Notes: generated by a model from the letters alone, not told the origin. 63,273 nucleotides of DNA, filler included, from Perkinsus chesapeaki ATCC PRA-425 (GCA_013115145.1; 8 parts of 8 records of this genome joined end to end with filler, not necessarily neighbours in it), one strand, 5' to 3'. Shown: positions 5,081 to 39,938, numbered from the whole stretch's first letter. Translations and numbers: made by a program.

Positions 5081-5227
5081 TTTCATGAAATATCATGAAA
5101 TTTCGTGAAATTTCGTCTGAAATTTCATCTGAAATTCCGGCTCACGAAATTCCGTGAAATTTCGCTTGAAATTGAAATTTCATGAAATTTCATGATGAAA
5201 TTTCAACGCCTCCGATGAAATTTCATT
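5081..5227. repeat. Cluster of (T)GAAAT(T)TC(A) palindromic motifs
   Basis: About a dozen GAAATTTC-like copies packed into about 150 bp. Confidence 0.85.
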
Positions 5228-5808
5228 TCGGAACACCCTAGTTGAGCTCAAAGGCGCTGCACATAGGTAATCATCCTGATAACTGCCTCCCATCCTTGGG
5301 CCTAGGGCCTAGGCACTGGGCCTGTGCATTTCTATGCTTCCGCTTTAGTTGAGCTTAGTGGAACCATAGTAGAGCACTGCTTTCAAACCAGTACTACGTT
5401 TCTGCTGCCGGCGCCTGCCACGCGCCGCCTGCGGGCGGCAGGCTGCCGCAAAACTCCGCTTGATTACATGGAGCCGAATATTTTCGTACGCGAGTACGAT
5501 GAGGAAGTATCAAGCAGGCGATCCCTCCTCCAAGTGGACATACTAAGCTGTTAGAAGACCGTCTCTATCTTGGTTGTTTTATTGAAGGACATGTTATCGA
5601 TGTAACTGATAGCGGGAAGTGAGTTGCCTTGCGCTTGGAGCGGATGGGGAATAGAGATAGATACTCAACCCAACAGGATAGGCTCTGAGAGCAGCTTATC
5701 CAATGCTTNNNNNNNNNNNNNNNNNNNNNNNNNNNNNNNNNNNNNNNNNNNNTTAATTAATTAANNNNNNNNNNNNNNNNNNNNNNNNNNNNNNNNNNNN
5801 NNNNNNNN

Positions 5809-5880
5809 CCGAGTGGTTAAGGCGGCGGCCTGCTAAGCCGTTGGGCTCTGCCCGCGAGGGTTCGAATCCCCCAGGTGTCG
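5809..5880 (+). tRNA. tRNA-Ser(GCT), 5' end lost in the gap
   Basis: A-box remnant CCGAGTGGTTAAGGCG, anticodon arm GCGGC-CTGCTAA-GCCGT, long variable arm TGGGCTCTGCCCG, T-loop GGTTCGAATCC, 3' acceptor strand GGTGTCG, then TTTT at 5885-5888. Confidence 0.92.
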
Positions 5881-6349
5881 TGCATTTTGGATGCCTCTGA
5901 GGCCGATGACGCGCGCGCGTAGATGTCAGGAGAGGCATCACTCTACACCTGCGATTTTGGTGTAGTATTATGCGACTGTTGGTACACCGCTTGAGGTTTC
6001 CCGCGTAAACTACCCCTTGGCAGCAAATGAACAATACCCGATGCAGGATGGCTGGGGGGGGGCGGAAATCGAGAAAGAAGAGGGGGAAAAAGAAAAGGAG
6101 AGAAGAGGGGGAAAGGACAGAGAGAAGGGAGGAAGGAGAAAAAAGACCAACCTGAAAGCATCCAAGTTGAATAGAGCCCATGGAAATACTTCCCGACGAT
6201 AACCGTTCCCAACGCAACACCAACGGCTCAGCTTTAAACATCATTTCGTCATCATGAGCTTTGTTCCTGTTCTGCCGGGGCGCGGACCTGAATGCGGGAG
6301 GAAAAGATTCTCCCCGTCGTCGCACAGTGCTCATTCTTATATGAAGGTG

Positions 6350-8560
6350 TTAGCCTTCTATCCTCGCTTTCCTCTCAGCCAGCCTGACTCGTTGCTGCCT
6401 CCGATATTGCTCGCGTTTCCAGGCATTCTTCCTCTCTTGACGTTCCCGTTTTCGTCTTGTTTTCTCTGCTTTCAGCTGTCGATACCTCTCTAGTGGATGT
6501 GTCGGGACAACTGGGCAATACCACATTAGCTTGTCCCCTAGGTCATCGTCCTGGAACTTCTCGTGGAAAGGTACATACGTGCCATCCGCGGGGTCTTGTA
6601 TTATGCTTTCGGTAGAGAGTCCACAGTGCCCACAGCGCTGCTTCTTGTCCGAGCGGACGCCCACGACTGAGAGTGTGAGCAACCTCTCGCGTGCTTTTGA
6701 TTGAAGCTCTTCACGCGTGCGTGCGTTCGAGTTGGGACCTATGGGAGGTGACTTGCCTCAGCTGAGTCGGTCCACCTACCCATACGCATCCCTCCGGTGA
6801 AACCGGGACCCCTCCCGAACATAAAATCCTGTATGAACCACTGCTGAGCGCCAGTGGACACGAACGGACATCAGGAGGGGCCGATCCTTGACAACATGGC
6901 TGCTTCCTTAACCCATACCGAGTGTCGGTTTTCGTTCTTACTGCTCCCCGGGCATATTCGCGAGGCACCGTTAGCATCACGATGAACGACGCTGGCAACC
7001 CCGCCTTCATACTCATCGCTGAGGCAATCAGCGTGGCTCGGCACGCAGCGGAATACTGCGGCAGTATTACTGCCCAGAATTGCGGGCCGAGCGAAGGGTG
7101 CCCAATCGTACCTTCCTTGACGGAGCCGTCTTGGGTAACATCACTCACGTCGGCCAGGGTCGCACACTCTAGGTCCAGTTCCCAGAAGCTTCGAGCTAGC
7201 TCTAGGAGGCGTTCTCGTAGCACATCGCCAAAAGGTATGTATCTTCTGGCGTTTTTTCTCAGTATTTCTTTGCTGATCTCCCGATCCGTCTTCCCATCCT
7301 GTATTCGTTAGGCCTGCAGCCTTTCCAAATCTCCATTGTCGGAGATATACATCGCCTCCCCCAACTTACAGCAGAAGAGCCCGTAGCGGCAGTGGTTTTG
7401 ACTGACCGATCGCGTGAGCGTGAATTGTGCATGCAGACTGTCAAGCCGTAGTATAACCCGATCGCAACCAACGGAGTCACGAATCAGCTCTGCATTATTC
7501 TCTCCCTCTGCCTGACAGCATCCTCGATCTAGATAGCATATAAGGGTGGATGGCAATCGCCTTCTCAGCTCTCGAAGAGCTTCCCTCAGGTGCCGTACGG
7601 CATGCGGCACATGCTGGTATCAGGGACGAATATAACGTTTCATATGACGCCTTCATCTGCGGTGAGGCACACATTGTGTGCCACACAAGGTAAGTACTCT
7701 CATTACCAGCTAGGCGGGAGCCGATAGCTCGGTGGTGATCCAACGACAATGTACTGCTCACAGTATACGATGCCAACTCTCGGGACAATGCATCTTTACT
7801 GGCTTGGTAATCAGCTAGAAGTGCTTGCTTCGCAATGCGGTACGTAAGACAGGTCTCAGGCAGCGGTATGAGGCTCGTACTATGAGCACTTCAATATTCT
7901 CTTTCACGATGGCGATATCATCAGAATTTGCCATCGTCGCGGCATTGAGTAGAGTACCCTCACAGTATTTCTGTGTCACAGTCCCGAGACAAGCTCGCCG
8001 TCGTGACACATTGCTAATCATGAGGCCGTTATAAGTCTCGCACTCTCTGCCTATCATCGCCCCGTTACGGAGCGGATAGACAATGGTCTTCGCCACTACA
8101 GTATGGGTACTTACGACCACATACTGGTCCGTAAACTCACCGCAAACCGACTTTGGAAGACTCTAAGATACTCTACGCAAAGAGTGAATATTGTACCATC
8201 TCCCTCCAAAACCACCTTTGGCCCAACTAGATGGGACACTCTGCGCGTGGCAGAAGGGCATTTCCCGCCTACTGGCAGGAATGCCAGTAGACACCGACGA
8301 TTCGAATCGCCAACTAGCTTAGCCAGCTTATCGGTACGTTGCCAATCGCGAAACGCCTCGTCGGATGACTGAGCCCTTTTGCGATAAAGAGCCTTTTGCT
8401 GTATAGCTCCGCGACAGATCGGATGGGGCTGTCAATTCGCAACTTCCAGCCGGCCTTCAGAAGGCCGAAGAATCTTCAAACCCGAAGAGAATCTCTTCAA
8501 CGTCAGGTCCCGGCAAAAGGGAATCGGTGGAATTGGTTGCGGAGGGTAGGACCTGAGCAT
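6350..8560 (-). mobile_element. Decayed DDE transposase gene, Dada-like DNA transposon
   Basis: Stitching minus-strand frames gives YSKRLFI...GPKVVLEGDGTIFTLCVEYL, then LSLDHH (D, ~7740), YLDRGCCQ (D, ~7528), RLDSLH (DxxH), HCRYGLFCCKLGEAMYISDNGDLERL, RKNARRYIP, HADCLSD, GSSKNENRH (E, ~6932) and a C-terminal CGHCG...H...WYCP zinc finger. Several frameshifts and stops. Motif order matches my recollection of Dada transposases. Confidence 0.72.
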
Positions 8561-8632
8561 GTTGTTTTGATTCAAAACTTTTGAATCACTCGCCTATACA
8601 GCCTCACTACCCGGTAGTGACTACCGAGGAGG

Positions 8633-8772
8633 GCATTCCGCATTCTTGGGGCTGCATTTCACTTTCTTGGGGCTGCCTTTCGCTTTCTTGGGGCTACATT
8701 GCGCTTTCTTGGGGCTGAATTTTGCTTTCTTGGGGCTGCATTTCGCTTTATTGGGGCTGCATTTCGTTCTCT
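8633..8772. repeat. 21-bp minisatellite (GCATTTCGCTTTCTTGGGGCT, about 6.5 copies)
   Basis: Direct tandem copies; the minus strand reads (KCSPKKA)n. Confidence 0.93.
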
Positions 8773-9995
8773 TCCCCCGGGTTCCCACCATAACATTCTT
8801 CATTGGGTCCCTGAGGTACCTACGACTGGACTGATGCCGGCATAAAGGCGGCAGACCGTCTGCCGCAGCCGGAAAGAAGAGCCTACTTCCCCCCTTTGAG
8901 CCTGGGGGTCGAAGGCTCTAAGTCTTTTTCGTCTCTCGAGCTTGGTGTTCGGCAGACACAAAAATCAGTCTACATATGTTCAACCAGCAGACCTAATCGG
9001 GCAGGATGGGTATTTTAAAGATGACCACTTTCCTTTACTTGGCATGTCAGTGGAATTGAGAATTTCAGTCGGAGGTTAATAGAGCATTTGTAGAGTCGTC
9101 ATTGAAGGGTAGTGGCTATTGGTTTGTTTTTGGCAGTAAAGAAGTTTTCTAGTGGAATGGTGATGACATCACCGTGATGTACCCCTCCGGTCATGCCAGG
9201 AACACCACAGCTGATCTGAACGCCATTCTGCAGTTCAAGATGCTTGGTGGGCTCTCGGTTGTGGGTTTGATGGGAAAGATAGGCGATGAAGGAGGAGATA
9301 TAATAGGAGGAGAGGATAAAAGGAAACTACCAACTGCTACTGAAAAGTTATAAAGTTTCTGTTACTAGCGAAATAATAAATAATTCAAGTTAACGCATGT
9401 ATGTGTCATTGCATTGTCGCCACTGACTGAACGCAAGGCGGTTGAGGTTTGGAAGAACAGACTAATGAAATAGAGATAGGACCCTAACCGCGACTCTGCC
9501 TATCTATTCCGGGCCCCACTACAACACTTCGGACCATGAAAAAATCAAAGTGAGCGAAAACACGCGTGTGGCCCAGACGAGCAAGGGCGGACGAGCACTC
9601 CGATAAAACGCACTCACACAAAACGGGAGTACGATTATATCTGTTCCAAGCAACTTGTCTGAAACGAGATCGTCCGTAATCACAGCTGCTTACTCGGGAG
9701 GGCACCAACAGCATGCTTGCTTACTAAAAATTTAATGAATAAAAACCGGCGGGAATAACCCCGGCTCATATAAATCGATCCATAGAGCCAATGAGGCGAG
9801 CGGTAATAGAATACGCGCCCATGTAAGCCTCCGTATAATCGGAACTACCTGAATCGCCATGAAACATTGGGGAATAAAGATAATATAAATCGGTGCTGCC
9901 ATCATCATTGATGATTTGTTAATCATATGACATTCCACGTAAGCCTTCTGTTAGAAAGATTAGAGAGTTAATCATTAATGTGTTGCTCTCTTGGC

Positions 9996-11033
9996 TCAAT
10001 GATGTTTTGCCAACTCAATTGCTTGTTTAACAGCAAGATCAGGTCGAAGGACGCCATACAGCATTTCCACTCCCTTTACTGTTCTCACTTTACCCTCAGT
10101 AGCATTCAATAATATTTCCTTTATCACATCTGGTTTGAATTTCTTGATACTTTGTATTAAAGCTGCTATGCCACCAACAATCGCAGTAGCACAAGAGGAG
10201 CCTCTGTTTTTCTTATACTGCCACTGACCACCTCCATGCCTTAGAATTGCTGATATGACTTCTGTACCAGGCACACCAAAGCTAGCCAACAGAGAAGCTT
10301 CAGACAACAGCAACGTAGGATCTGATGTTAATGTCGCAGCAACGCACAACACACCAGGCATAGCGTTCGCCAATGAACAGGGTAACTCGATCTCAGAAGG
10401 CCCGGTTGCAGTATTGTTGTTTGAAGCGGCAACGACAACGAAGCTACCTTGATTGACGGCCTTCGTGATCACCCTCTTGAGCATCGTGGACCTCTCCGGT
10501 GTAAATGGAGTACTAAAAGCGAACACTATAACCTCAGAATCCTTGGACTCGCTCGCTATCTCCCATCCTCTTTCCGTTTGCCAGACGGCAGCGGGTCCGT
10601 CGGGGAGAGCAACTAACCTAATCGGTCTTATCTTAACTCTATCAGCTATTCCAGTGATACCAATACCATTGTTGATTACTCCAGCGATAATACTAGTCAC
10701 CATCGTACCATGTCCTTGCGTGTCTTCGACTGATGGCACTGAAGAACCAGAAGCGTCCCGCCCTTTCAATAGTTTGCCCACGAGGTCAGGTTGCTGAGTA
10801 GCGACACCCGTGTCGATAACAGTGACGATGACATCTCTACGGGATAACCCGGACTCTCGGACCGCCCTCCAAGTCTCTTGGATATGCAATGCCTTGAATA
10901 GGGCTCTCTGATCCGAAAAGTAGGGGTCGTTGGGCGGGTATGGTAGTTGACCAAAGACGACCCGAGGCCCTCTGAAGGACAAAACTAGACACCAGTGTAA
11001 TATATACTTCGATAGTCTCGGAAGTGTTATCAT
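9996..11033 (-). CDS. Subtilisin-like serine protease (peptidase S8), intronless, probably secreted
   Basis: Catalytic triad motifs VIDTG (D), HGTMVTSII (H) and GSSCAT (S); oxyanion AASN; PNDP mature-domain start after a hydrophobic N-terminus. The ORF is open back to 11090; ATG at 11033 preferred. Confidence 0.93.
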   Translation of the reverse strand: MITLPRLSKYILHWCLVLSFRGPRVVFGQLPYPPNDPYFSDQRALFKALHIQETWRAVRESGLSRRDVIVTVIDTGVATQQPDLVGKLLKGRDASGSSVPSVEDTQGHGTMVTSIIAGVINNGIGITGIADRVKIRPIRLVALPDGPAAVWQTERGWEIASESKDSEVIVFAFSTPFTPERSTMLKRVITKAVNQGSFVVVAASNNNTATGPSEIELPCSLANAMPGVLCVAATLTSDPTLLLSEASLLASFGVPGTEVISAILRHGGGQWQYKKNRGSSCATAIVGGIAALIQSIKKFKPDVIKEILLNATEGKVRTVKGVEMLYGVLRPDLAVKQAIELAKHH

Positions 11034-14000
11034 ATCAGCGAAGACAGTCATTGAAATTTTACGAATATTCGTTAAACCTGATGGAATCAATCATATCGAT
11101 CTCCAAGAAACCTCGCCAATAACCAATTTCAGAAGATTTAAAATACACGACAGACTGTTTCGGAAAAAGAATCAAGAAGACTGGTCATTAAACGGTGATA
11201 GGCCATATGCCATTACCGAGAGGTAGGAGGGTTAAGTTTTTACCGGTAAGACCCGCGCACGGGTGAGGCGATGGCGAGTGATTAAAGAGTGTTCTTCTAT
11301 CCGCAAGCACATCTCTTAAGTTAAGCGCCGGGCAACCGTGGCGCGGCGCATCGCGACCTTGAGCGGCTAGTTCACTTGTGAGAAAACCAGGCCTGCAGTG
11401 AACGAACCCACAACAAACCGACAACAAGTAGAAGAAAAACCTCCAACGGCAGAGCGTGTCAGTTAGAGTTCCTGAGACAAGACTCGCTATACCGATGTCT
11501 TCAACAAATTAAAGGGAAAGGGGTAGACATCAGGCGCAGGGCAGCACGCAGTCCGGCGCACAGGTGGCGCAACCGCCAGCTGCTGCCCCGGACACTGCAA
11601 CCTGCGAATCCGCAACGGGAGTGCGGCAATACTCACGGCTTGCACTCGGTGGCTTATGTGGCGTTTACTAGAAACTTTTCGCAGCGACCGAACGAGTCTC
11701 CGTACACCTCAGAAGTTGACGCTCTGTTATTGGCCGCTCGCCCCACATTGCCAGCCTGCTGCCCGCATTGATGTCCACACTAATGTAGCTACCCAGTTAT
11801 CTATAATTCCTTTTGATCAGACACGTCAAAAGTCCTGAGAACGACTGTGAGTGAGACTCGAAGCGGTTCCGAAATTTTGCACGCGTGGAGCGAAACGGGT
11901 CACGCCACGCTAAGAATGACGGAAACAACCATTTCTCTGTGCGCCCTATTCACTGATGCCACATCAGGACTCAACTGTTGCCCCTGGCAAGGATATGTAC
12001 TATTCAAGACACAAGACTTCTTTTGGAGGCTCCAAATTGGAACAACACGCTCTCATAACGATCACTAATCCCAGTCCTTGCCACGACATTGGAGTCAATC
12101 ACTGTGGCCCTTAAGAATCCAATGGGGATCGCGCGACGCGATTGGCGCCATGTACATAGCTATTGCAAGTTGCAACTGATCTGTTTACTGGATGTATTGA
12201 TACGTTTCGTGTTTCGTAGTTTCCGCAGCAGAAAGTGAAAAATTCGAAATATCATATTATATTTTGGCAGGCTGTATTGATGGGGAGGTCGGATGGGGTT
12301 TACTAATACCGCCAACCTTATCGCCGCCTCTCGCCGCACCTTATCGTACTAGTCGACCCTGTAGTCCGTGCCCTGACTGTGCTCCCGGTTACTTCAGTGG
12401 AGGTTTGGAGTCTTCCTCTCCCAGCTAAACATACAGTACCGCATAGTTCCTCCTTCGAGGCTCGAAGCTCGAGCCCAATGTTGCTCATTAAAATAGAATA
12501 TTCGTAGTCAAAGTGAATTTCCTATAGGCCGGAGGATGCACCGGCCTGAAGGGAGCGCCAATGTTTTTCGCGTGTTCTGGACCAGAACTTCTGGTAGTCC
12601 GCATCAGATACGTTTCTGTTTGCAAACAGATTCTGTTTCTGTTATTTGTCTGGACAGGGTCACCCCGTCCGGCTGACAGAGGGGCCCAGAAGAGCGTCAG
12701 GGTAGGGTCGTTTCCCTTAGAATGACGCGGAGGTTTTCGGTCGAAAACTGGTAGGAAATCCCCAGTTCCCAAGAATTCTTTGCGAAGTACCTGGTTCTCG
12801 AATTCCTACCCGGAAATTTCCTGGAAATGGCGTTGAGAAATTAACTGTGTAAACCCCGCGCATGCGCATCGATCCTGTTTAACAGTTCTTCGTAAATTCC
12901 CATGACGGTCTTCTCTGATATGATAGCACGTCCGAGACTGTTGCAGTATATAACTGTGTGAGGTACTCACACAATTCCTGTCTATCGCACAATTGTCGTA
13001 CCATGGCATTACTAGCTTTCTTTACTCCTGATATTCTACTCATTACTCACTCTGTTCACTACCCTATCTCGTTGAGTCAACGACGTTAACTATGAGCCCA
13101 ATCTATAATTGTTGTGTTACGACTACGCCATCTGAGATAGCGAGTGAGCGAGTGGAAACTTTTCACTCGTTCAGTGCCATTCCGTACAGTCGCAACTGGT
13201 TCAGTGTCGCATCGTGTAGCTCCTGTACAGAGAAATTTCGTACACGTCGCGTTTTGCGCGAACAGGTAGTAGCTGACCCACTAGTGCTCGATTGTGATTT
13301 GTAGGCTTTTACGTGCTTCCTCCGGGGATTGATCCGAAGTCGCCTGCATGGCAAATAAGAAATACAACCACTAAAGCACAACGGCTGGGTCACGACGGTG
13401 GTTACGTAACGCAACATGCCTAGCATTGTGTGTGCCACAACTGACACATGTTGGGTTTTATTGAAGCCTCGTAATGGCTGCAAGTTGCAGCCTGCAACAG
13501 TGTTGCGGTTCTGCAGCAACACCTCGCGAAGCCCTACTTGTATTTGAGATCGAGCATAATCCACCTAGCGCTAGCGAAGATGTGGTAATTACATGTCAGA
13601 GGATGGTCTGATGCTGGTGAAGGCATCGATTATGAAAGACCTCAAAAAAGGGGGTGGTGCTTGCTCATTGAAGACGCATTCGTTAGCTGTTTGCGTGGTA
13701 AAAAAGCTAGATGCAGGAGCCTCTGTCGTACCGACGAACTGTCAATGACTCGGCTCAACAATCGTGGCATACTCAGAACTCTGCCCGTTATAGTTCACTG
13801 AAACATTCCCATAACGAGCTTGAAACGAGACAATTCACATGATTCCACCCCATCCTCCGCATAGGGCACTCCATCGACTTCGAAGTTTCGCTACCGGAAT
13901 ACCAGTAACCTCCGACATCAGCTCGTATCGTTCATCCTCGAGATAACTGAACAAGAGCATAAGGTGTGATCAATCTCGCCAGTGTTCGAGATTAACGACA

Positions 14001-17200: not shown

Positions 17201-18719
17201 TCTTTCCATACGAAGAACGAGAATACATCCTTCCCGGGTGAATGTAAAGCTCCTCCGAGACTGGTTGAAGAGAAGTCATTAACAAACCACGACGATGTTG
17301 ATCCGAAAACCCGCCGTAGATCCTCGATACTTGCGCCAGAAGTAGAAGGTCTTGCAGATTGATATCTCCCGCGAAATTATCTCTGTGAGAGCTCGTAAGA
17401 CACACCAGCCTCTTAGTAGTGTTGACCTGGCGCGAGAATGATATACCACAGCAAATATCATCATTACTTCCAAATTTCTCAATCGACGATAAAGCGAGTT
17501 GATCATCGGCAGATCAATACTCTTTGAATTAGCAATCAGCATCCCCATGCCTGAGAGGCGGAAAGTCTTTTAATATTATTAATTCCCTTCGTCTGCTTAC
17601 CGACGTTGTTTCGCTCCAAAATAGGTGACTTTAAAGTGGGATCGTCCGCATATCTGACAGCCGGTATCAACAGGGGTATTGTCATTATTGATACAGCTGA
17701 TACGTTATCACGAAAAATGCTTACTGAAGATATATTGATTTATTAGTAATATATTGTGATAAAGCCACATACGACCCTACTAGTCATTCCTTCATATTAA
17801 TTAAATAATATATTATAATGAAGCCCAATACTTCATTTGCCGATCTAGTCACTCTATTGACAATTTCACAATGTCACACGAAATTCGTTGAACAACAGAT
17901 CCCCAAGACGCCTACTGTGAACTAGTGATTCGCCTTCTTCGATTAGCATGACATTATCAACTGATTCTGTCAATACGACTACTACCTGGTGAGTCGGATA
18001 CTACACTAAATATGATCATATAACATATTTTCTACAGCGTAACATCGTAAACATACACCCACTGCTTCAGTACATTGCATTATCGCATCACCATATGATC
18101 TATTCTATGCTTCATCATACAAAATTAATATTATGAATATATAAAAATCATTGCCGACTTCCGAGCTTTAGCTAAAATCAATACATTTTCCGACGTTCAA
18201 TCGCTGTTTGATAAACCCTCCTATAACTACTACCTCCATTCTGCATCTATATGTTCGGCAAACAGGACACTTTGAGGGTCTATAAATTGATACTGAGAAA
18301 ACGAACAAATTCAGCCACAATCTTCGATATACCAGTCTCACAAACGCATGAACAACTTCTCCAGACATACCAGTTCCTAGTATTTTACTACTAGAATCGC
18401 AGGAGCCGACTAATCGGCAATGAATTTATAGACTTCGTCCGAGAATCAGCGATAGGCACGATCTCGACGTTTAGCAAATTTAAGATATGAGCGAGGTCAC
18501 CATTTTATTATCGAAGATAAAGATATCGTTCCGTTTCACACTGCTCTTAATTATCAAACAACGATAATTTCGTGGCGAGTGACGCTAACCCGATAGTACA
18601 GGACTCCTTTTATCATCGTTATACTTCTCGTCCCCTCGGAAGAATCCTGTTCTGACATGTCGAACCTGCTGAAGACTAATCATGGCTGGCGCTGTCGTCC
18701 GAGCTGGCCTTATGATCAT
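14255..18719 (-). CDS. Multi-exon 3-hydroxyisobutyryl-CoA hydrolase-like (crotonase fold) protein with mitochondrial-type presequence; catalytic motifs degenerate
   Basis: Spliced exons read IDLPMINSLYRRLRNLE|VNTTKRLVCLTSSHRDNFAGDIN, MVAEYHKPLVTLYNGEV, YGFFP|VAGASFLLARLPFCIGNYLALTGEVVKGQDIVYC|GLAKNWI, WSLAPYIGLIQKCFS, FASRTIDNIGRGSPLASHVT and PDWFEHEDV, all collinear with HIBCH. First exon MIIRPARTTAPAMISLQQVRHVRTGFF. Gene ends and exons between 17550 and 18600 are approximate. Confidence 0.8.
15288..15359 (+). tRNA. tRNA-Ala(TGC), complete
   Basis: GGGCGTG/CACGTCC acceptor stem, D-loop TAGTGGTA, TCTGC-TTTGCAT-GCAGA anticodon arm, CCGGG-TTCAAAC-CCCGG T-arm, T5 terminator at 15360-15364. Confidence 0.97.
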
Positions 18720-19954
18720 TCCATTTAGCATTATAAAATAAACTGTCAATCGAGTGGTGACGCTAACTCAGCAAGGAAGAGGGACTCAAACGGCTGGGGG
18801 GGGCTTTATACTGTATAAAGCGTCCCATCCTTTGGATTATATAAATCATACAAAGTGGATCCAGCCAGCCGACCGTTTCACAAGTATCTTGACAGACGAC
18901 TTGGCAATAGATGAAGTATGCGCACTGTGAATATCAGCTTCATATCCACAACAAGAATAACACTTTAGACGGAATCTTGAGACGGCGGCGACCATCGAGG
19001 AAATGAGATATCAGATTTCAAAACCAACTTGTTAATCTGCGCCATCAAAAATACTTGAAATTTACTCTCCAATCTACTGTGTCGATGAGATATCCCGCAC
19101 TGTGTATGTTGCAACACGCATTTCATCAATACGTTAACCGTCGCTGTTAAATGGCTGCTTCTCTACCGATCACCAACGCCCTTAGTTTATAGGTTGCTTG
19201 AAAGATAATCGAAGACTGGTGTGACCATACTACCCTTATCAGTATTTATAGCACAACCTCATGAGAGAGATAACGGTGATGCCTCCATCGACTTCATCGC
19301 CTACCTGCCGGAGAGTCTGCTGTTAACGAGAGCTCCTTGTCCTTATATACATATAATGCAGCCCAGCAAGTAAAGATGACGCCTACAATTTCCAGCAATT
19401 TCTGTGGTAATTGATACTAGCACTACGGGAAGCGGCCCAAAAGTCTGAATCTTTCAAACACAGTGGTTGTTGACTTTCATAGTTATTCGATTTTTGCTCA
19501 GACTTAGGGCGAATGAATCGATTCTTGTTCTTAGTCCCCGCACCGATAGAATGTTTCTCAGTTTTAGATATCTGTCAAAATCGAACACACTGTAGATACT
19601 AATAAAACCAATCAACTACCGAATTCATGTCATCTCGTCTGACACTGTTATACCTCGACCACCGACATCTTCAATAGGAGAATGTTTTCGTACTTCGTCA
19701 CAGTGTCCAATATTGAATGAACTCAATAAGATACTAACTCATAACAGAAACTTGCCAGCACTAACATGCTCTCCATCTTCATAGAATACTCAGCGTCACG
19801 CGCCACGAAATTACTTGTCATTTTATGATACTATTTGATCTGTGTACACTTTCTAAGATAAACATTTGTATACGATTTTCATGTAAGAATAAAAAATGGC
19901 AATTAACCTGACGAAAAAGCCAATTCTCACGCGCCACAAAAATATTCTTCTTAC

Positions 19955-21015
19955 CAGACCAGCTATGGAGTCTTCAACCTTAGATTCGTCAACATCTCCC
20001 GAACACATTCCTCCCACTGAGGATGATTCCCCAACGACTCCTGCTACAGCACGTCTGACGAGAATGAAGATATTTTATGGTATAGGGCGGGCTTGAAAAT
20101 AATAACAAGTAGAATAATCAGATTCGTTTTGGTATAGTCTATGATGAAGTATGATATTTTGTCATGCCTATACTATAGACATGACAAAATACAATACGGA
20201 AAGGTGCGAACAAGTCAAAGAGTAGGATTCTTATAAAAGGAAAATAATAAAAGTGAATGTCAAATAAAAAGACTCGGCAAAATTCCAGTGCAAAAATGAT
20301 AACTGAATATCATACAGAAAGACTTTTGAAAAAGTTCTCGAGTGAGAGATGATAAAATATAAAAATTGAATGTATGAGCACAAGCTTACCGAACTTGCTC
20401 GGGGAATCCCGAGATCGGCGCTTCACCAACAATCCTCGGCAAGGAAACTGAGGACGCCATCGATCGGCTGAAATTGGCATTATACCTGAAAGATAGGGCA
20501 AAAGGACGAAAGAGCATTCAGGTATATTCCACACACTGAAGGATAAAGTAGGTCATTTAAGTACGTCTAAAAAGACTGCGAAGTGCTGTCGATGGAGTCC
20601 ACATGAAATTTAGAATCTATAATTTTCTTTCATCACCCTCATCTGCGGGAATGTCAACGGTATGCCACTAATCAAGGCTCAGAGGTTTGTGAGCATATGC
20701 CGCATACTGAAGCATAGAGATAACAAAGTAGATAGAGTAAACATTTCTTATATAAAAGGACAGCGAAGTCCTGTTGTAAAAGTATTATATAAATATATTT
20801 CATAAATCGCAATAATGGATACGACCGGATTCACTCAGAGATGAGGTTACATAATAACATACAAATTCAATACTCAATACAGACAGTGACCAACATCGAT
20901 AAGCATCTTCGGACATCTGCCGCACTCACGCCTTTGCCCAAGATGACGCCCCTCTTGCTTTAGCAAATCTAACTCCAGCTTGGAAGCCTTTGGATGCAAA
21001 CCGTCCAGTAGGCAT
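19955..21015 (-). CDS. Small-gene family copy F (unknown function)
   Basis: Exons 21015-20930, 20485-20390 and 20054-19955 splice to MPTGRFASKGFQAGVRFAKARGASSWAKAYNANFSRSMASSVSLPRIVGEAPISGFPEQVRRAVAGVVGESSSVGGMCSGDVDESKVEDSIAGL. Last exon not resolved. Confidence 0.8.
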
Positions 21016-21460
21016 AAATAAAACAACAACTAAACCTAGTGATGGAATAAATCAATATATAATCGACTTTTCTTTAGCAACTGAATACAAGCAGCAGACA
21101 ATCCTAAACGGACTGAAGTTGATATGCTTCCACAAAACCGACACAACTTCAACACCCCCAACGCGAACAAGTCAAGCGATCAGAAACATGTCATAATTCA
21201 CCTTATACCAAACCACAACTTGTTTGAATAGCTAGTTGACTTACTATGTTCAATAGAATACAATGGCATTCAACTAGTTATTATTGTTATCGATAGATAA
21301 GGATGTTGTTAATATTTTGGATGATAATTGAAATGCCTGAAGCGAATACACAGCAGACGTGACATAATATCAGATTATTCAACGATCTTTTTAATAAGCC
21401 CTAGTTTTAACTCATCTATAATATTAACTCAAAGTACAGGACAATCGACATAATTCTTAC

Positions 21461-33640: not shown

Positions 33641-34659
33641 TAAAGCCTCGAGTGCTCGAGCGGGTGATCCGCATCAGAGCATCGAATTTGAGAATTCTAC
33701 GAGGGCATTAATGGAGCCCCCCCGACGTGGTCGAGGCGGTGGTGCCGAACTTAGGCCCTCTCAGAGCCTTGCCCAAATGTGTGGCCGTTTCACCTGGGCT
33801 GGGGTGTCGGCTTGGATGACTCTGCCCCTTCGGCTGCACTGTACGACCCCTCAGTTAGCCCTAATCTTTGCGGGCTCACTCCCCCGCGAGCTATTTGGGA
33901 AAAATTCCTTTACTGAGCTCACTTCCCCAGTTACTCAACACTAGATGGTCGCTTGGACTGATTTCCGCACCATGCGCATGCGTGCAGTTCCCTCTACACC
34001 ATTTCAAGAACTAGTTAGTAAAACCCAAGACCAAATTGGTAAAAGCCCAGAACAAATTAATATAGCNNNNNNNNNNNNNNNNNNNNNNNNNNNNNNNNNN
34101 NNNNNNNNNNTTAATTAATTAANNNNNNNNNNNNNNNNNNNNNNNNNNNNNNNNNNNNNNNNNNNNCACGCGGACTGACGCGTTACTTTTCTACTCGCGT
34201 TGACCTGGCTTCCTGAAGCCTCTCCGCGGTGGTCGGTGTGTTGCGGTGGCTGCACTTCCCTTTTTGGGGTGCTCTTGGACCTATTTTGCAGGGGCGGCAG
34301 TTGCACGAACCTCCTAGGTCTTTGCCATCACGATGCCCGCCTACTCCGGCTTGCATTCTCGGTGCAGTTGTTGTTGCGTCACTTATCTTCTCTCTGGTTT
34401 TGGCGCTCCCGAGCCCCCTCTCCCCGGTTCACCCTCCCCCTCAGAGGGCGACTCCCTCTGCAAATCACTCTCAGTGCTCCTTGCATGAGTCTCATTCGGT
34501 GGCACTAAACGCAACAGAACCGCTGATGCTACGCTTCCCCACCAGGGGTACCGGCAGCCCTGCGCCGCTACTACAGCGGTCTTACCGGACTGCTTGTGAT
34601 CGGGTTGTGCGGTTTACTAAGCCGGACTTAGTCGTCGTCGGATGCTACCCGACCCGCCC

Positions 34660-36855
34660 TCATGGATGCAAGAAGGTCGGTTGTTTCGGTGTCACCGTCT
34701 TCCATCCGGCTGCTCGCACAGGGGCTCCTCGAGATGGCCCATCCGCGGGGTTCGCCGACGTCTGCACGCGGCAGAAATACACGGCGATTCCTTGCCGAGC
34801 TATGTATTCCCACACTCGGGCCACCAGCATATTCAGATCACCGCTGCGACTGGATCCTCGTCGCAGTAAGTTCTCGACGACTGTCGCATCTGTGTACACG
34901 ATATAACACCGCTCCTTCATGCGACAGAAGCTGCTTAACGCTTGTGCCACGGCGTACAGCTCATAGGCTATTACTTGCGTTTCCCTCGCTACCAGCATCC
35001 CGTCATACCACCTTGGTACCGTTGTCCCATACCACCATACTACTTCCCCGTCTGCCGCGACGGCCACCCCTCCTACACCACCCTCTCCGGTTGCGTCCGC
35101 GTACACACTCACATGCTTGCGGCCACTCCTACCGCTTCGGCCCACCGTGACCTGCCTGCGCGACACGGTCCGTACCAGGTTGCTTCCGTCAGCCTCCCCC
35201 AGCAAATGAAACATTCCCATGAGCGCCTGTCTGACTTCCTCACTTCTATCTGCCCTTTCTTGCACAGCTTCTCGGATCAATACCCTCACCAGCCCCCGCC
35301 CACAGCGGCCTCGTAACACGCTACATGCGAAGCTCAGACGCCCGGCCAGTTTCCTCCCCTTCGCCCCTCGTGAGAGACCTTCTCTCACCGCCGCTGCCAC
35401 TGCGCTCATCAGACTGTCCTTCCGATCGTCATCCAACGAGCACCGCACCTCCCCAGCTTTAAGCGTGATCATGACACCAAGTACCTTCGCGGCGCTTTGC
35501 GGTCGGACGTCCTTGGTTTTCTTCACCACCCACCCAAGCACGTTGTTCAACTCGCCGAACACCTCAAACGAGCTTTCCGCCGTTTCGACGTATTCTATTG
35601 CATAATAGTCGTCTAAATACGACTGAATGGGGCAGGCGAACAAGACCCTCATAACGTGGCTCAGCATCATCCCTAGTCTCAAATACCCGCTTACCGACGC
35701 TACGGCCCCGAAAGGCATTACGCGATGCATGTAACCGACCCACTCTCCATCTGCATTTCGTATCAGCACCGTCCCCACACTCTGGTCGGTGGCCCGGACG
35801 GGTATCTGGCGGTAGGCGTCACGATGATCCCGCTTCCACAAGGCTAGTTCAGGGTCGTCACCCTCCCCATGTTGCCGCCAAATGGTCTTTACCACGTCTA
35901 TACTCGTATCTAGCTCCGGCAAGGTTACTTTATACGGCACATGTGTTCCCCGGTTGACCAGGCTCGTTCGGTAATCATCACAGGGCCGCAGTTTTCCCGG
36001 TTGTTCGACAACGTGCCGCAGCGTCGCTCCCACTCTCTCCTTCCTTCTGAGTTCTTCTATACTATACGGTCCTGCCAGCCGTCCCTGCCTCACTTCCTCT
36101 TCGGCCTGCTGGTATAGCCAACGTTCCTCCTCGGTTGGTTCCTTCACGTCACCTTGCAATCTGTCAAACCGTTTATGCGCGAACGTTCTTATGTCGTCGG
36201 TACTACAGAGCCGGTCCCTTTTTATCGTGTCACTCGTCCACAACGGCGCGAACACTGCACTTCCCGGAAGCTCCCCGTACAATGCTAATCCCCCGTTCTC
36301 TCTCAACTCCTTCACAAACTCCTTATCGGGATACTGCGTCTCCTCACATAGGTACTCCAATAGGGGCAAATTAACCTCTCTACAACATTCCGGCATTTGC
36401 GCCCCCCACTCTGCCCGTAGAGGCTCCAGTCTCTTCGCGGCCTCCAGTACGCGATCCATTATCGCACGTCTTCTTCTTGGGGCGGTATCTCTCTGTCGGG
36501 CTAACGCCTCTATTGCCGCCGTGAGGGTGGTCGGCAGCGGGGCGTCCATATCCTCCGGGGCTACGACTTTCTTCGCCAGGTCGATGTGTCCCTCGGGGGT
36601 CAAGGTCTCCTCCTCTGGCACCCCCTCGGCTCCTGGCCGGAATCGCCTACCCGATTTATAGTAATGGAAGTCTGCGTCGCCTGGCTGGTAGTGGACCATC
36701 GCTCTTATTGACGGCACTTCAATTCCTCCTACGAGCGTGACGTGCGGATGTGCTGCTGCTCCTTGTCCTCCTGTCCCCAGATGCCTTCTTTCGCTGATTC
36801 TAGCCTTCTTGCGGGCTCTTCGATGTGGCATTTTCTTTAAACTAACTAACTCCAT
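34660..36855 (-). CDS. Reverse transcriptase + RNase H (DIRS/Ngaro type), intact 731 aa
   Basis: RT motifs LRPCDDYR, KRDHRDAYRQIPV, MPFG and YLDD; RNase H motifs VYADA, IAYELYAV, VYTDA and ANPADGPSRG. No protease or integrase. Confidence 0.93.
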   Translation of the reverse strand: MELVSLKKMPHRRARKKARISERRHLGTGGQGAAAHPHVTLVGGIEVPSIRAMVHYQPGDADFHYYKSGRRFRPGAEGVPEEETLTPEGHIDLAKKVVAPEDMDAPLPTTLTAAIEALARQRDTAPRRRRAIMDRVLEAAKRLEPLRAEWGAQMPECCREVNLPLLEYLCEETQYPDKEFVKELRENGGLALYGELPGSAVFAPLWTSDTIKRDRLCSTDDIRTFAHKRFDRLQGDVKEPTEEERWLYQQAEEEVRQGRLAGPYSIEELRRKERVGATLRHVVEQPGKLRPCDDYRTSLVNRGTHVPYKVTLPELDTSIDVVKTIWRQHGEGDDPELALWKRDHRDAYRQIPVRATDQSVGTVLIRNADGEWVGYMHRVMPFGAVASVSGYLRLGMMLSHVMRVLFACPIQSYLDDYYAIEYVETAESSFEVFGELNNVLGWVVKKTKDVRPQSAAKVLGVMITLKAGEVRCSLDDDRKDSLMSAVAAAVREGLSRGAKGRKLAGRLSFACSVLRGRCGRGLVRVLIREAVQERADRSEEVRQALMGMFHLLGEADGSNLVRTVSRRQVTVGRSGRSGRKHVSVYADATGEGGVGGVAVAADGEVVWWYGTTVPRWYDGMLVARETQVIAYELYAVAQALSSFCRMKERCYIVYTDATVVENLLRRGSSRSGDLNMLVARVWEYIARQGIAVYFCRVQTSANPADGPSRGAPVRAAGWKTVTPKQPTFLHP

Positions 36856-37054
36856 CCAGTGTTCCGAGCCCGTGTCTCTTTCGCCACTCTTCTGCTTTGG
36901 AGACGCTCCCAGAGGGAGACCCCGCCGGTGTCACACCGGTAACAATCGCGCGCCGGTGACGCCGCCACTGCGCCCGCGTGACGCCCCCGGGCGTCGCCCC
37001 TGCTTCGCCCGTTCATCGCGCCACACCATTTCTTGCCTGGTGTAAGTTCCTTCC

Positions 37055-38285
37055 ATGTCCTCCCCTCCTGCTAGCTCCTCGGTTCCGCCTTCCTCCGGCG
37101 GCACTTCACCGCCTGCCCAACGGCGTTCCTCCCGCCGCCACTCTAGTTCTAGCTCGTCTGCTCTTCCACCCGCTCCGCCTGACTCTGTTCTCGGTGCTGA
37201 CCCTCCCGCCATCTTGCCGCTCGCACTCCTCGGCCACCTCACCGCGTTGCAGACCCCCCCTGCCTTGGTGGCTTCTATCTCCGAGGTTCTGCTCCAGCAC
37301 AACCTCGATGACCCCGACACTTTAGCCCAACTGTCACGCCCAGACGTGGATCTGCTATTCCCCGGTGAGGCGCTTTTGGCATCTCGCCTAAAGGTTCTTG
37401 CGCTGGCGTCTCGCTGTCGGACCGTTGAACCCGCTCCCCTACCGGATCCTCTTCCGCACCCCGACCCGGTCGTTACTCGTTTTGACCTGGCGGCGGCCTT
37501 CACGGCGCGTGGCCTCGTAGGCTTGGATAGTCGCTTGCTCCCTCCAGCCCACATATTCGACCACCTGACCAAGCCCGGAACTGATCCCCTTTCGGCGGTG
37601 CTGGACCTCCCCCTTCTCAAATTTCTTCCACCTCAGGAGTCTTCCGTCACCCCTNNNNNNNNNNNNNNNNNNNNNNNNNNNNNNNNNNNNNNNNNNNNNN
37701 NNNNNNNNNNNNNNNNNNNNNNNNNNNNNNNNNNNNNNNNNNNNNNNNNNNNNGGCTACCTCCTCCCCCTCTTCTGGATCCCGCGACCCCACTGTCGATC
37801 TCTTCCGTTCTAACCTCAAGCCCGGTGGTTTCAACCTCGCGTTATTATCTTGGGCATTGACGGCCCTTCTCACCTCTGAGATCAGCCTCGCCTCGGTGTT
37901 CGGGCATGTACAGGCGTGTAACCGCGTGCTTGAACACCATGGTATCCTTACTGCACGGCTTTATGATGAAGCCCGCCGCCGTGGGATGGCCCTAGACGTC
38001 AGGGCGGGCATCCATCCCGGGGCGGCGGGGCTAACCTGTTCGGACCCAGCTACGGTCGCGGACTGCAAACACCTCGTAGATCGAGCTCTGGCTTCCCGCT
38101 CGTCTTTCTCTTCCCGCGACAACCGACCTCCGCCTTTCCGGTCTCGGGGTCGACCAGTCTCTTCTCCGTACGAGTCCCGTCCGCGCGCATCACCGGCTTC
38201 CACCACTTCAACTGGGCGCCCTCCCTCCTCGTCCCCTCCCGACAAGCCCTCGTCTTCCTCTGGTTCACACTCCGTGCGGTCGTAG
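37055..38285 (+). CDS. Gag-like ORF of the YR retroelement (spans the 99-N gap 37655-37753)
   Basis: Low-complexity S/P termini and central HVQACNRVLEHHGILTARLYDEARRR, resembling the YD..FR gag motif. Reading frames are open on both sides of the gap. Confidence 0.65.
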
Positions 38286-38351
38286 CTTGCCCTTGGGGGC
38301 CACACGTCCTGGCTTCTACCCTTTTCCGGCGGTATCGTCTGCCCCTCTATT

Positions 38352-39545
38352 TTGTTTTTTTTTCCACCTCCTGGCGAGGTCCGTTCTCATTCGTTGGTTT
38401 TTTCCCGGTCTCCTAGTTGTTGTGTTTTCGTGTTTTATCTCCCCCCTCACGGCCTGATCACGTTGTACCTGTCCGGCGTCCCCCCCTGTCCGCCCATGCA
38501 GCCAGTCTCTCCTCCTCGGCCTGCTATGCAGCCTTCGTTCGGCGACCTCCTCCGGGAATTGCGGGCGTGGGGTGCATCTTCTCATTCTCCATCCCGCGTA
38601 ATTCCCCCTGCGACCTACCCCGGGCGCTGCCCCACGGCCACTCTGTTGGCCGAGTCATGGCGACTGGGCTTCCGTTCTATCTGCCCCGCTACGGCGCGCA
38701 GCTACGCGGCAGCTCTGTCTTCCTGGCACTCTTTTGTCGCTTGGTTCGCCCCCGCCTCGGTCGACGTATTCCCTGCGTCCCCGGTGCTGGTACGCTGCTG
38801 GCTGCTCACTTTGGGAAATGCTGGGACCGCTCGGTCATATCTGGCTGCTCTACGTAAGGCTCATGATCTTCTCGAACTCCCGTTTCTCGCTGACACTCCT
38901 CTGGTCCGAGCAGTCGTTCGCGGGCTCCGGTCGGTGGCTCCACTGCTTTCTGCGTCCCCTTCCCGGATCCAGTTCCCTCTGCTCCAGCAGCTTGTTACTG
39001 CGGCGGTACGTCGGACCGATCACGAGTTCGCATGTTTGTGCATTCTTGCCTACCATTTTCTAGCTCGGGTTCCTTCCGAGCTTCTTCCCCTCCTGAAGTC
39101 CGACGTAGCCCTTCTTCCCGATATGTCCCTCCGGGTCTGCTTTCCCCGCCGTAAGAACTGGCCTCAGGGGCATGTCATCCTGCGTCTCTGTACGTGCACT
39201 TCCTCTCCTGCCACCTGTCCACACCGCGCTCTCTTGCGTCTCGCTAGCTTGTCTCCGCCTGGCCAAGCTCGGCTGACTCTTATGGGTGCTTCCGCCTTCA
39301 CAACGCGCCTTCGTTCACAGCTACAGGCCCTGCACATTCCTCACGCAGCGTCCTTCTCCTCCCACGCTTTTCGTCGGGGTCACGCCGAAGACCTGGCACG
39401 CGCCGGCTGCAGTGTCTCTCTCATCATGGAGGCTGGCGGCTGGCGGTCCTCCGCGTTTGCTACCTACCTCGCTCACACGCCGCAGCTGAGCTCGACTCGT
39501 GTGGTCGAGATGCTCTACGACTTCGACGACGATCCTGCCACCTAG
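38352..39545 (+). CDS. Tyrosine recombinase with N-terminal SAM-like binding domain
   Basis: TARSYAAALSSW and TARSYLAALRKAH helices; catalytic R (FLARVPSELL), K (RRKN), HxxR (HAFRRG), W (GGWRS) and Y (ATYL). Real start is probably an internal ATG near 38496. Confidence 0.93.
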   Translation: MFFFPPPGEVRSHSLVFSRSPSCCVFVFYLPPHGLITLYLSGVPPCPPMQPVSPPRPAMQPSFGDLLRELRAWGASSHSPSRVIPPATYPGRCPTATLLAESWRLGFRSICPATARSYAAALSSWHSFVAWFAPASVDVFPASPVLVRCWLLTLGNAGTARSYLAALRKAHDLLELPFLADTPLVRAVVRGLRSVAPLLSASPSRIQFPLLQQLVTAAVRRTDHEFACLCILAYHFLARVPSELLPLLKSDVALLPDMSLRVCFPRRKNWPQGHVILRLCTCTSSPATCPHRALLRLASLSPPGQARLTLMGASAFTTRLRSQLQALHIPHAASFSSHAFRRGHAEDLARAGCSVSLIMEAGGWRSSAFATYLAHTPQLSSTRVVEMLYDFDDDPAT

Positions 39546-39938
39546 TACACTTCTTCTCACATCTGCTTCCTGCTGTGGGCGTCTCGTGTTTGTCACAATG
39601 GGGTACGTCGTCGCCGCCACAGTCGGGTCGCTGATGGAGTAAGACGGGCTCGCGCAAGGACGGACAATGGGACAGGGGACAGAGATCCCGACGCTCTCGG
39701 TCTCATCTGCCCAGCTGATCGTCCTGCTTGTGAGCTCATCTTCCTCNNNNNNNNNNNNNNNNNNNNNNNNNNNNNNNNNNNNNNNNNNNNTTAATTAATT
39801 AANNNNNNNNNNNNNNNNNNNNNNNNNNNNNNNNNNNNNNNNNNNNGCGTTCCCTTTTCCACGTTCTTCGACTTCTACTCTTCCAAGAGCTGGTATACTG
39901 GAGCTGCTACAAGACTTGGCAATGCCAAGAGACCCTTT

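Follow-up and report, generated by a model that had tools for sequence, protein, structure and literature searches.

A short contig from the clam parasite Perkinsus chesapeaki carries a reverse transcriptase (RT)-RNase H gene on one strand and, on the other, a gag-like gene followed by a tyrosine recombinase (YR), raising the question of whether these genes form one mobile element or owe their layout to inversion, chance abutment or misassembly. The window, i.e., the whole stretch of DNA analysed, comprises 63,273 nucleotides, filler included; the element piece is cut at both ends and takes up the whole of a 5580-bp contig (34167-39746). A first-pass annotation had described it as a YR retroelement of an alveolate, and RT, RNase H and YR do lie in one unit in this Perkinsus DNA. 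The order is head-to-head, namely Pol (-), a 199-bp spacer, ORF1 (+) and YR (+), with these features:

34167-34659, minus strand: non-coding stretch downstream of Pol (3' of its stop), truncated where the contig ends; homologous ORF and Pfam match absent
34660-36855, minus strand: Pol ORF, 731 aa, intact
35419-36012, minus strand: RT core, Pol aa 282-479
34729-35103, minus strand: RNase H, Pol aa 585-709
36856-37054, unstranded: Pol-ORF1 spacer, 199 bp between the divergent start codons; candidate control region
37055-37654, plus strand: 5' part of ORF1 ('gag-like' by position), from ATG 37055 up to the assembly gap
37655-37753: assembly gap in ORF1, nominally 99 N
37755-38285, plus strand: 3' part of ORF1, with TAG at 38283-38285
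38286-38495, unstranded: ORF1-YR spacer
38496-39545, plus strand: tyrosine recombinase, intact; alternative ATG at 38526
39546-39746, unstranded: region 3' of YR; possible YR-side element end near 39620-39650

The P. chesapeaki protein FOL47_000737 is a 100% match on this contig. The minus-strand RT-RNase H frame is intact, as first proposed, being stop-free over 731 aa from ATG 36855 to the TGA at 34660-34662, a stop whose position is homologous in the alignment of all full copies. From N- to C-terminus, Pol consists of a basic N-terminus, a conserved N-terminal domain of unknown function, the RT, a connection and RNase H. The RT has motifs A (WKRDHRDAYRQIP, Pol aa 340-352), B (PFGAVAS, aa 381-387) and C (SYLDDYY, aa 412-418, nt 35622-35602), with D343, D415 and D416 invariant in Pol alignment A2. 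The RT core (aa 282-479) matched the canonical element L007 with an E-value of 2e-9 (tblastn), whereas Pfam RVT_1 scored only 0.12 in this Pol versus 1e-27 in L007; this RT has diverged beyond the reach of Pfam, as the RTs of Symbiodinium DIRS elements reportedly have. The top Foldseek matches of a poor RT model were nonetheless all reverse transcriptases (MMLV, 1e-7; CaMV; Ty3; foamy virus; HIV). Candidate DEDD residues of RNase H lie in YADATGEGG, AYELYA, YTDATV and NPADGPSR, motifs kept in the alignment with the L001, L003 and L004 loci described below; the Pfam matches were weak (RVT_3, 0.033; hepadnaviral RNase H region, 0.075).

No methyltransferase had been seen at first reading, and Pfam matched none in Pol or any other ORF, Pol stopping at its conserved site right after RNase H; as a positive control, Dam (PF05869) was detected in L007 at an E-value of 2e-4. 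The Dam-like methyltransferase that follows RNase H in DIRS1-like and PAT elements (DIRS sensu stricto) is thus lacking from the Pfam results. Protease and DDE integrase matches were likewise absent from every ORF: across all ORFs and all family members Pfam found RT, RNase H and Phage_integrase only, and YR retroelements are characterized by the absence of a DDE integrase and an aspartic protease.

The recombinase downstream of ORF1 proved as intact as claimed. Its open frame spans 38352-39545 with ATGs at 38496 and 38526, and the catalytic residues are kept (numbering from the TTG at 38352): R in ARVPSEL (aa 238-244), H-x-x-R in HAFRRGH (aa 338-344), W in GGWRS (aa 362-366) and the Y nucleophile in ATYL (aa 370-373, nt 39459-39470). 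A family profile matched Cre recombinase (E 4e-21) over both the core-binding and catalytic domains, and Pfam Phage_integrase scored 1.3e-4 in this YR and matched 6/7 aligned members. Cre, an enzyme of phage P1 whose loxP sites are defined, has the R, H-x-x-R, W and Y residues in common with the Perkinsus YR.

The gag-like ORF begins at ATG 37055, where it had been placed, and its supposed separation of about 200 bp from Pol measured 199 bp; both start codons are backed by conserved N-termini in other copies, that of ORF1 being MS..PP.SSV in this piece, L001 and L003. Its location thus held; a function as gag is putative: Pfam found no family in ORF1, the structure model was poor and all-helical, and similarity to any gag was not detectable, so that 'gag' is a presumed label given by position only. 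ORF1 (37055-38285) is interrupted by the N gap only. Its pre-gap part (frame of 37055; 41% identical to L001 ORF1) and post-gap part (frame of 37755, open from its first full codon to TAG 38283-38285) align to consecutive parts of ORF1 in L001, where it has 406 aa, and L003, the 3' part aligning to the C-terminal half in L001, L003 and L002. These alignments make the two sides of the gap parts of one gene with unchanged order and orientation, though they do not prove that the reading frame runs on without a break. The 23 residues visible around the gap already fit the length in homologues (22-29 aa), which leaves room for few missing codons, if any; the nominal 99 N puts the halves one frame apart, and they would be in frame if the true gap length were 2 mod 3. 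The ORF1-YR spacer is in frame with both ORFs and has no further stop, an open frame that is not conserved, since L001 has three stops there and L003 uses another frame.

The check proposed at the outset, retrieval of other genomic copies, gave the following loci, copies and collinear relatives alike:

L001, P. chesapeaki: YR 175-1203 (-), ORF1 1480-2700 (-), Pol 2883-5126 (+); full copy, head-to-head
L003, P. marinus: YR ~7163-8120 (-), ORF1 8315-9512 (-), Pol 9644-11902 (+); full copy, head-to-head
L002: ORF1 (-) and Pol (+), head-to-head; degenerate fourth copy
L004: zinc-finger gag, RT/RNase H and YR, all plus strand; collinear relative, outgroup
L005: gag then RT on one strand; collinear relative
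L008: RT/RNase H then YR on one strand; collinear relative

The RT/RNase H gene thus lies on the strand opposite ORF1 and YR in the window, L001 and L003, and one-strand Perkinsus copies, which would have told against the layout, are not what turned up. Because diverged copies from two Perkinsus species share it, the head-to-head layout is confirmed as real and as a property of the Perkinsus family. RT, RNase H and YR occur in one unit at four loci, the composition of YR retroelements (DIRS order sensu lato), and the 731-codon open frame, the conservation of catalytic motifs in RT, RNase H and YR and the repetition of the layout at three other loci are together beyond chance. The Pol-ORF1 spacer measures 199 bp in the window, 182 bp in L001 and 131 bp in L003; no conserved motif could be aligned among these spacers, and Rfam found no family in that of the window. 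The bidirectional promoter first suggested for this spacer is putative, and dsRNA formation a conjecture.

Base composition ties the two strands together. Over its full length the element has 60-70% purine on the Pol-sense strand, and this holds for the spacers as well as for synonymous sites in each of the three genes. At four-fold degenerate sites the purine fraction is 0.69-0.71 in Pol and 0.28-0.36 in ORF1 and YR, each read in its own sense, compared to 0.42-0.43 in host genes and 0.38-0.48 in the collinear relatives. The skew runs unbroken through the Pol-ORF1 spacer, the spacers siding with the Pol-sense strand, and the most purine-rich stretch on that strand is the ORF1-YR spacer (0.72 over 38286-38525, to the second ATG). 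The skew therefore tracks the element and not gene direction, which suggests that the whole unit is replicated through one single-stranded intermediate. The region 34167-34659 is still purine-rich on the Pol-sense strand (55-70%), and for this reason lies inside the element.

The termini had been reported as not visible, and no terminal repeats occur inside the piece; terminal or split repeats were not found in L001 or L002 either, nor inverted repeats in the piece (cut at both ends), L001 or L003 5700-13500, where the YR side lies in an N gap. The sole repeat pair, in L003 (8736-9155 and 5928-6347; 420 bp, 99.5% identical), copies an internal ORF1 segment, its second copy lying on a small contig between two scaffold gaps. 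A weak lead to the YR-side end is that the purine excess ends 75-105 bp past the YR stop in the window and 75-115 bp past it in L001, with a similar 15-18-nt motif at the switch (window 39605-39622; L001 63-77), so that this end may lie near 39620-39650. The same switch near the YR-side contig ends could instead speak for another permutation, in which ORF1 and YR converge on Pol, the ends lie in the 'spacer', and the contigs are a tandem-copy junction or a circular form, although it could equally mark another kind of boundary. A circular DNA stage has been proposed for YR retroelements, and each of the two P. chesapeaki contigs has the size of one unit and is truncated on either side. Even so, we consider this permutation improbable: in P. 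marinus the head-to-head pair is internal to a 270-kb scaffold, where the skew gives way abruptly, ~330 bp beyond the stop of Pol, to DNA of ordinary composition; the skew is continuous over the spacer; and the contig ends do not overlap each other.

The histories of the genes were also compared. Identity among the window, L001 and L003 copies is 45-50% for Pol, 44-48% for YR and 32-41% for ORF1 (window Pol: 49% to L001, 45% to L003, 40% to L002 (P0003), 28% to L004). Pairwise identity ranks alike for the three proteins, with L002 the most distant in all three and L004 the outgroup; Pol, ORF1 and YR thus co-diverge as one unit. In a nine-sequence RT tree the four Perkinsus copies fell outside a group of L004, L005 and L006 (support 97/97), and their own clade had weak bootstrap support (51/94). 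Because the nearest relatives are collinear, the Perkinsus layout is derived; L004, L005 and L008 are metagenome and read-assembly contigs. Homologous RT and YR adjoin on one strand in L004 and L008, which makes their association older than the rearrangement. These observations weigh against a composite of two habitually adjoining elements, a Crypton-like DNA transposon (ORF1 and YR) and an RT/RNase H element that lacks an integrase of its own, as do the spacer length held to 131-199 bp and the single compositional skew over both blocks and their spacers. We accordingly give a composite little credence, even though the blocks lie on opposite strands with separate starts, share no terminal repeats that we found and include a Cre-like YR, as Cryptons do, and insertion of one DIRS-type element into another is on record (PMC7192593).

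It is similarly hard to credit that these are domesticated host genes or dead relics. Each copy is the sole member of its 90% protein cluster among 5.8 billion clusters, L003 has its ORF1 split between two frames, and the degenerate L002 carries a YR fragment in the other orientation. Word-based protein searches matched nothing beyond Perkinsus proteins and a single unnamed contig protein. On the other hand, one genome holds several diverged paralogous families, some of them on repeat-like contigs the size of one unit, three genes have kept their catalytic motifs together, host genes do not share the skew, and the ESM Atlas has clusters of 50-90 similar unnamed proteins, Perkinsozoa included, for both Pol and ORF1. 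Least plausible is that an inversion at this locus, an assembly error or the abutment of two unrelated elements produced the layout in one contig, which the short (5580-bp), doubly cut and internally gapped contig and its clearly wrong NCBI gene model might suggest. Gene order and orientation are repeated, at similar distances, at three other loci in two species; these differ by 50-60% in protein and hence represent independent assemblies of different families, and the mirror-image synonymous-site composition of the two gene blocks shows that the orientation is old.

The piece is therefore very probably a copy of a Perkinsus YR-retrotransposon family (methyltransferase-less and of the DIRS order, broadly understood) with a fixed order of Pol head-to-head with ORF1, then a Cre-like YR. 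In the mechanism that we propose, separate and oppositely directed mRNAs for Pol and for ORF1/YR would start in or near the 130-200-bp spacer, and Pol would reverse-transcribe a unit-length RNA of one polarity. By analogy with other retroelements, whose sense strands are purine-rich, we lean towards the Pol-sense strand as template, with ORF1 and YR carried antisense. The cDNA would then be completed and circularised, and YR would insert the circle through site-specific recombination, a route already put forward for DIRS, PAT and Ngaro elements. A bolder version, which we advance only tentatively and think somewhat doubtful, is an 'ambisense' retrotransposon: the 5.5-kb unit would be copied via one Pol-sense single-stranded intermediate, the replicative RNA would carry ORF1 and the recombinase in antisense, leaving a divergent promoter on the DNA form as the sole source of their expression, and the layout would be a rearrangement specific to Perkinsus within a clade of myzozoan YR retroelements that is otherwise collinear.

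To our knowledge, YR retroelements are the least understood retrotransposon order. The DIRS-1 replication cycle was tested only recently (PMC7192593). Having Pol on one strand and gag and YR on the other raises the questions of which RNA is the template and how antisense-encoded proteins arise, and the opposite gene orientations provide a natural experiment for separating mutation bias of a replication intermediate from coding-sense bias. Relatedly, Perkinsus genomes mis-annotate these elements as long 'hypothetical proteins' that string together antisense ORFs, and modelling them correctly would give these shellfish parasites better repeat and gene annotation.

In the YR elements known to us, the recombinase is at most inverted. 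Here the gag-like gene is inverted along with it, making this a new structural variant of YR retroelements, compared below with the named superfamilies by their descriptions. The parallel first drawn, with kangaroo-type elements, holds in part. Kangaroo of Volvox carteri and a 'novel' PAT element of Daphnia pulex also have YR and RT on opposite strands, and such inversions reportedly arose more than once (PMC4157794; PMC3266345). In both, however, YR alone is inverted, gag stays on the RT/RNase H/methyltransferase strand (PMC4157794), and there are a methyltransferase and split direct repeats, whereas in Perkinsus ORF1 goes with YR, Pol stands alone head-to-head with ORF1, and the methyltransferase is absent. 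Ngaro elements, compared by description, likewise have RT/RNase H and YR without a methyltransferase or ORF overlaps (PMC3266345), and their order of RT/RNase H then YR is that of the collinear L004 and L008; Ngaro elements differ in their split direct repeats and in having all ORFs on one strand, an arrangement present in L004, L005 and L008 and absent from the window, L001, L003 and L002. The gene order of VIPER/TATE (kinetoplastids) and DIRS1, gag-YR-RT/RNase H (PMC3266345; PMC6681497), matches that of Perkinsus once Pol is flipped, and VIPER too lacks a methyltransferase, but it is collinear and known from kinetoplastids only. SymbioDIRS elements, as described in the excerpted account, come from a related host lineage (Myzozoa), have an RT that has diverged too far for alignment to the Pfam RT model, an integrase/Pol ORF order shuffled between families, A-coding-B-A-B repeats and, in some, Dnmt3; that excerpt does not mention an opposite-strand Pol (PMC5890265). 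The Perkinsus family also adds the Perkinsozoa to the hosts of methyltransferase-less YR retroelements with a Pfam-escaping RT, as noted for Symbiodinium.

Positions 34167-39746 of the window are a complete 5580-bp contig of Perkinsus chesapeaki, in which the first-pass annotation had recognized a tyrosine-recombinase (YR) retroelement with its RT/RNase H transcribed divergently from gag and YR. The start codons given there for the RT/RNase H ORF (Pol) and the gag-like ORF (ORF1) agree with those in the ORF list, from which the following features are taken.

ATG 36855 to TGA at 34660, minus strand: Pol, 731 aa
ATG 37055, plus strand: ORF1
Between these two start codons: Pol-ORF1 spacer, 199 bp
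38352-39545, plus strand: YR ORF, with ATGs at 38496 and 38526

The Pol ORF matches the last 731 residues of NCBI protein FOL47_000737, which is encoded on a contig of the same 5580-bp length, at 100% identity. That model is 1229 aa long, Pol being lengthened upstream by ~498 residues (window 36931-39657, minus) through spliced Arg/Gly/Glu-rich ORFs antisense to ORF1 and YR; the extension appears to be an error of gene calling on the purine-rich strand. As in this model, a called gene (372-1368, plus) is antisense to YR in L001, a second P. chesapeaki locus.

The Pfam matches of Pol were all sub-threshold (RVT_1, 0.12; RVT_3, 0.033; a hepadnaviral RNase H region, 0.075), and a PDB sequence search with the Pol family profile gave nothing at E ≤ 1. 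Alignment of five family members showed RT motifs with the invariant aspartates (motif A WKRDHRDAYRQIP, motif B PFG..S, motif C SYLDD) and four conserved acidic RNase H motifs. Residues 282-479 of the window Pol match the canonical element L007 by tblastn at 2e-9; L007, which has RVT_1 at 1e-27 and a Dam-like methyltransferase (MT), served as the positive control for RT and MT detection. The AlphaFold model of Pol is poor (pLDDT 51), and only the family of its Foldseek matches was used: these were exclusively reverse transcriptases, MMLV at 1e-7 being followed by CaMV, Ty3, foamy virus and HIV. The N-terminal region of Pol (aa 40-240; nt 36136-36738 on the minus strand) shows conservation across the Perkinsus copies and, in part, in L004, a marine metagenome contig; it carries the motifs HYY.SGR, LPTTL, LEPLR.EW and LPLL.YL...T.YPD and matched no Pfam family.

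The YR family profile matches Cre at 4e-21 with both domains covered, and the complete set of residues R, H-x-x-R, W and Y was found; across the family, the YR sequences vary too much to yield a search pattern. ORF1 gave no family in the Pfam scan and a poor all-helical AlphaFold model (pLDDT 46), so that 'gag' is a label by position only. Its ESM Atlas structural neighbours (SAM or HhH-like) were set aside as too weak, with TM < 0.35 by query. Pfam scans of the element's ORFs detected no MT, protease or DDE integrase.

In the window, ORF1 is interrupted by an assembly gap. Before the gap the frame is that of 37055; after it the reading frame stays open from 37755 onward and joins the ORF at 37857-38285. 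The two parts align to consecutive segments of the intact 406-aa ORF1 of L001 and of its homologues in L003 (P. marinus) and L002 (P. chesapeaki), which argues that they belong to one gene in the same order and orientation. Around the gap 23 residues are visible, as against 22-29 in the homologues, so at most a few codons are absent. With the gap at its nominal length (99 N) the two frames are off by one, and any actual length of 2 mod 3 would bring them together. Both sides are the same gene, exact continuity and frame being beyond proof from this sequence.

Three further Perkinsus loci carry Pol and ORF1 head to head.

Head-to-head copies at other Perkinsus loci
L001, second P. chesapeaki contig: YR 175-1203 (minus); ORF1 1480-2700 (minus); Pol 2883-5126 (plus)
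L003, 270-kb P. marinus scaffold: YR ~7163-8120 (minus); ORF1 8315-9512 (minus); Pol 9644-11902 (plus)
L002, P. chesapeaki: YR C-terminal fragment only, on the Pol strand; ORF1 8738-9715 (minus); Pol 10001-11674 (plus)

In none of them do all ORFs lie on one strand, and the divergent layout proposed from the window alone thus recurs. Their Pol proteins are 40-50% identical to the window Pol, and DNA similarity to the window is restricted to parts of RT, which indicates that these are different families and not one locus re-assembled. Pol, YR and ORF1 give the same ranking of pairwise identities, which is what joint evolution of the three genes as a single unit would produce. The Pol-ORF1 spacers measure 199 bp in the window, 182 in L001 and 131 in L003; neither these spacers nor the 3' flanks proved convincingly conserved when aligned, and an Rfam scan gave no match. 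The observation is real, and the head-to-head layout is a family trait.

At L002 the C-terminal 140-156 aa of YR stand alone at 7718-8188 (plus), inverted relative to the other copies and adjoined by a host Ufd2/U-box gene. Along its coding strand the fragment has a purine excess (0.60 at four-fold sites), which implies that its orientation is also old; this points to either a second arrangement or some tail-to-tail remnant. The L003 copy sits between tandem paralogous aspartyl-protease genes (4443-5755 and 18084-19384, 86% identical), with a LINE-like gene (Exo_endo_phos_2, RVT_1, RNase_H) nearby at 20806-21412. An IMG/VR scan revealed no relatives and a metagenome scan three loci only; looking up the exact Pol proteins of the window and of L003 yielded no further contigs, and cluster look-ups no extra copies. 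Rarity is judged here by word searches of proteins only.

The plus strand of the window element is pyrimidine-rich from end to end, despite genes in both directions.

Purine fraction at four-fold degenerate sites
Pol of the window, L001 and L003: 0.69-0.71
ORF1 and YR, each on its coding strand: 0.28-0.36
Host aspartyl-protease genes flanking L003 (two): 0.42-0.43
Both RT and YR of the collinear relatives: 0.38-0.48

Non-coding spacers agree with the Pol-sense strand, at 0.60-0.72 purine. Together with the four-fold-site values, this means that the bias tracks the element, not coding sense or amino-acid content, and it must have needed time to accumulate in the present orientation. In our reading, the skew is the mark left on the whole unit by a strand-asymmetric mutation process, which would be expected of a unit that replicates via one single-stranded intermediate. 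Retroviruses and LINE-1 have sense strands rich in purine or A, which favours the Pol-sense strand as template polarity; by this analogy we hold that polarity with a little better than even confidence. The A-richness of L1 has been noted previously (PMC9099904).

The L003 block, rich in purine and in GC, extends from the N gap (7163) as far as about 12230, where it stops sharply, ~330 bp past the Pol stop. The window block reaches the left contig end and terminates on the right 75-105 bp past the YR stop, and that of L001 ends 75-115 bp past its YR stop. A similar 15-18-nt motif (ACGTCGTC.CCACAG-like) occurs in these last two copies (window 39605-39622, plus; L001 63-77, minus), 60-100 nt past the YR stop and exactly where the skew stops. 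L003 showed no such motif; the sequence is a candidate for an end of the element or a site of recombination and may be due to chance.

No inverted or direct repeats were found in the window element, L001 or L002. L003 has a direct repeat of 420 bp (8736-9155 and 5928-6347, 99.5% identical) that is an internal ORF1 segment; the window's assembly gap falls in the homologous part of ORF1. The 5928-6347 copy is part of a small contig flanked by the scaffold gaps 5828-5927 and 7063-7162 and abuts ~700 bp of DNA of ordinary composition. It may represent one half of a split direct repeat, derive from another copy as a fragment, or have arisen by faulty scaffolding. Placing this ORF1 fragment 600 bp beyond the YR stop was rejected because the YR C-terminus falls within the N gap 7063-7162, and because 5928-7062 was scaffolded as a contig of its own and is of ordinary composition next to the fragment.

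Expression of ORF1 and YR as a fusion by stop-codon readthrough was likewise considered. In the window (38283-38526) the two are in frame with a single TAG between them and no other stop before the YR ATGs, but the 210-280-nt ORF1-YR spacer holds three stops in L001 and is in a different frame in L003. Readthrough was rejected since the single in-frame TAG is conserved in neither copy, and the window arrangement is probably a coincidence. Spliced-leader trans-splicing occurs in Perkinsus, and could process a long precursor. Alongside the directly observed gene content, catalytic residues, conserved head-to-head order, co-divergence and unit-wide skew, a mechanism can be proposed in which the Pol-ORF1 spacer region would give divergent mRNAs, one for Pol and one for ORF1/YR, and a unit-length RNA would be reverse transcribed. 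The cDNA would then be completed and circularized, and YR would integrate it without target duplication, these steps following the model of Cappello for DIRS-1 and the variants of it for PAT and Ngaro (PMC7192593; PMC4157794).

Relatives on metagenome or read-assembly contigs are collinear. L004, reached via the YR search, has a zinc-finger gag-like ORF, a 933-aa RT/RH and YR all on one strand; L005 has gag then RT, and L008 RT/RH then a homologous YR. A small RT tree unites L004, L005 and L006 in a supported clade (97/97) and, weakly (51/94), the four Perkinsus copies with one another; L007 and P0007 are long-branch outgroups. The head-to-head order is thus derived in the Perkinsus group. The gag-like ORFs of L004 (35-673) and L005 (71-562) carry a CCCH zinc finger (Pfam zf_CCCH_4, 5e-5 in L005). 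The Perkinsus ORF1 showed no similarity to them, and hence the upstream ORF has apparently been exchanged for another or has diverged past recognition. L007 (metagenome Ga0335075, 211-4460) has gag, RT, RNase H, Dam-like MT and YR on one strand in a PAT-like order, with a frameshift between RT and RH.

P. marinus has been listed, from GenBank annotation, as a host of DIRS1-like sequences (PMC3266345); in the literature on Perkinsus DIRS or tyrosine-recombinase retrotransposons and on opposite-orientation RT/YR, no account of this layout was found. Kangaroo (Volvox) and a PAT element of Daphnia have been described as having inverted YR domains, and the literature stresses that features of this kind emerged repeatedly (PMC4157794; PMC3266345). 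In kangaroo and Daphnia PAT, however, gag lies on the strand of RT/RH/MT; Ngaro and VIPER are without MT, but collinear. The DIRS-like elements of Symbiodinium have an RT unseen by Pfam and a shuffled integrase/Pol ORF order (PMC5890265), and they are the most likely kin. The Perkinsus element is thus a new structural variant within known YR retroelements, from a host group in which these are all but undescribed.
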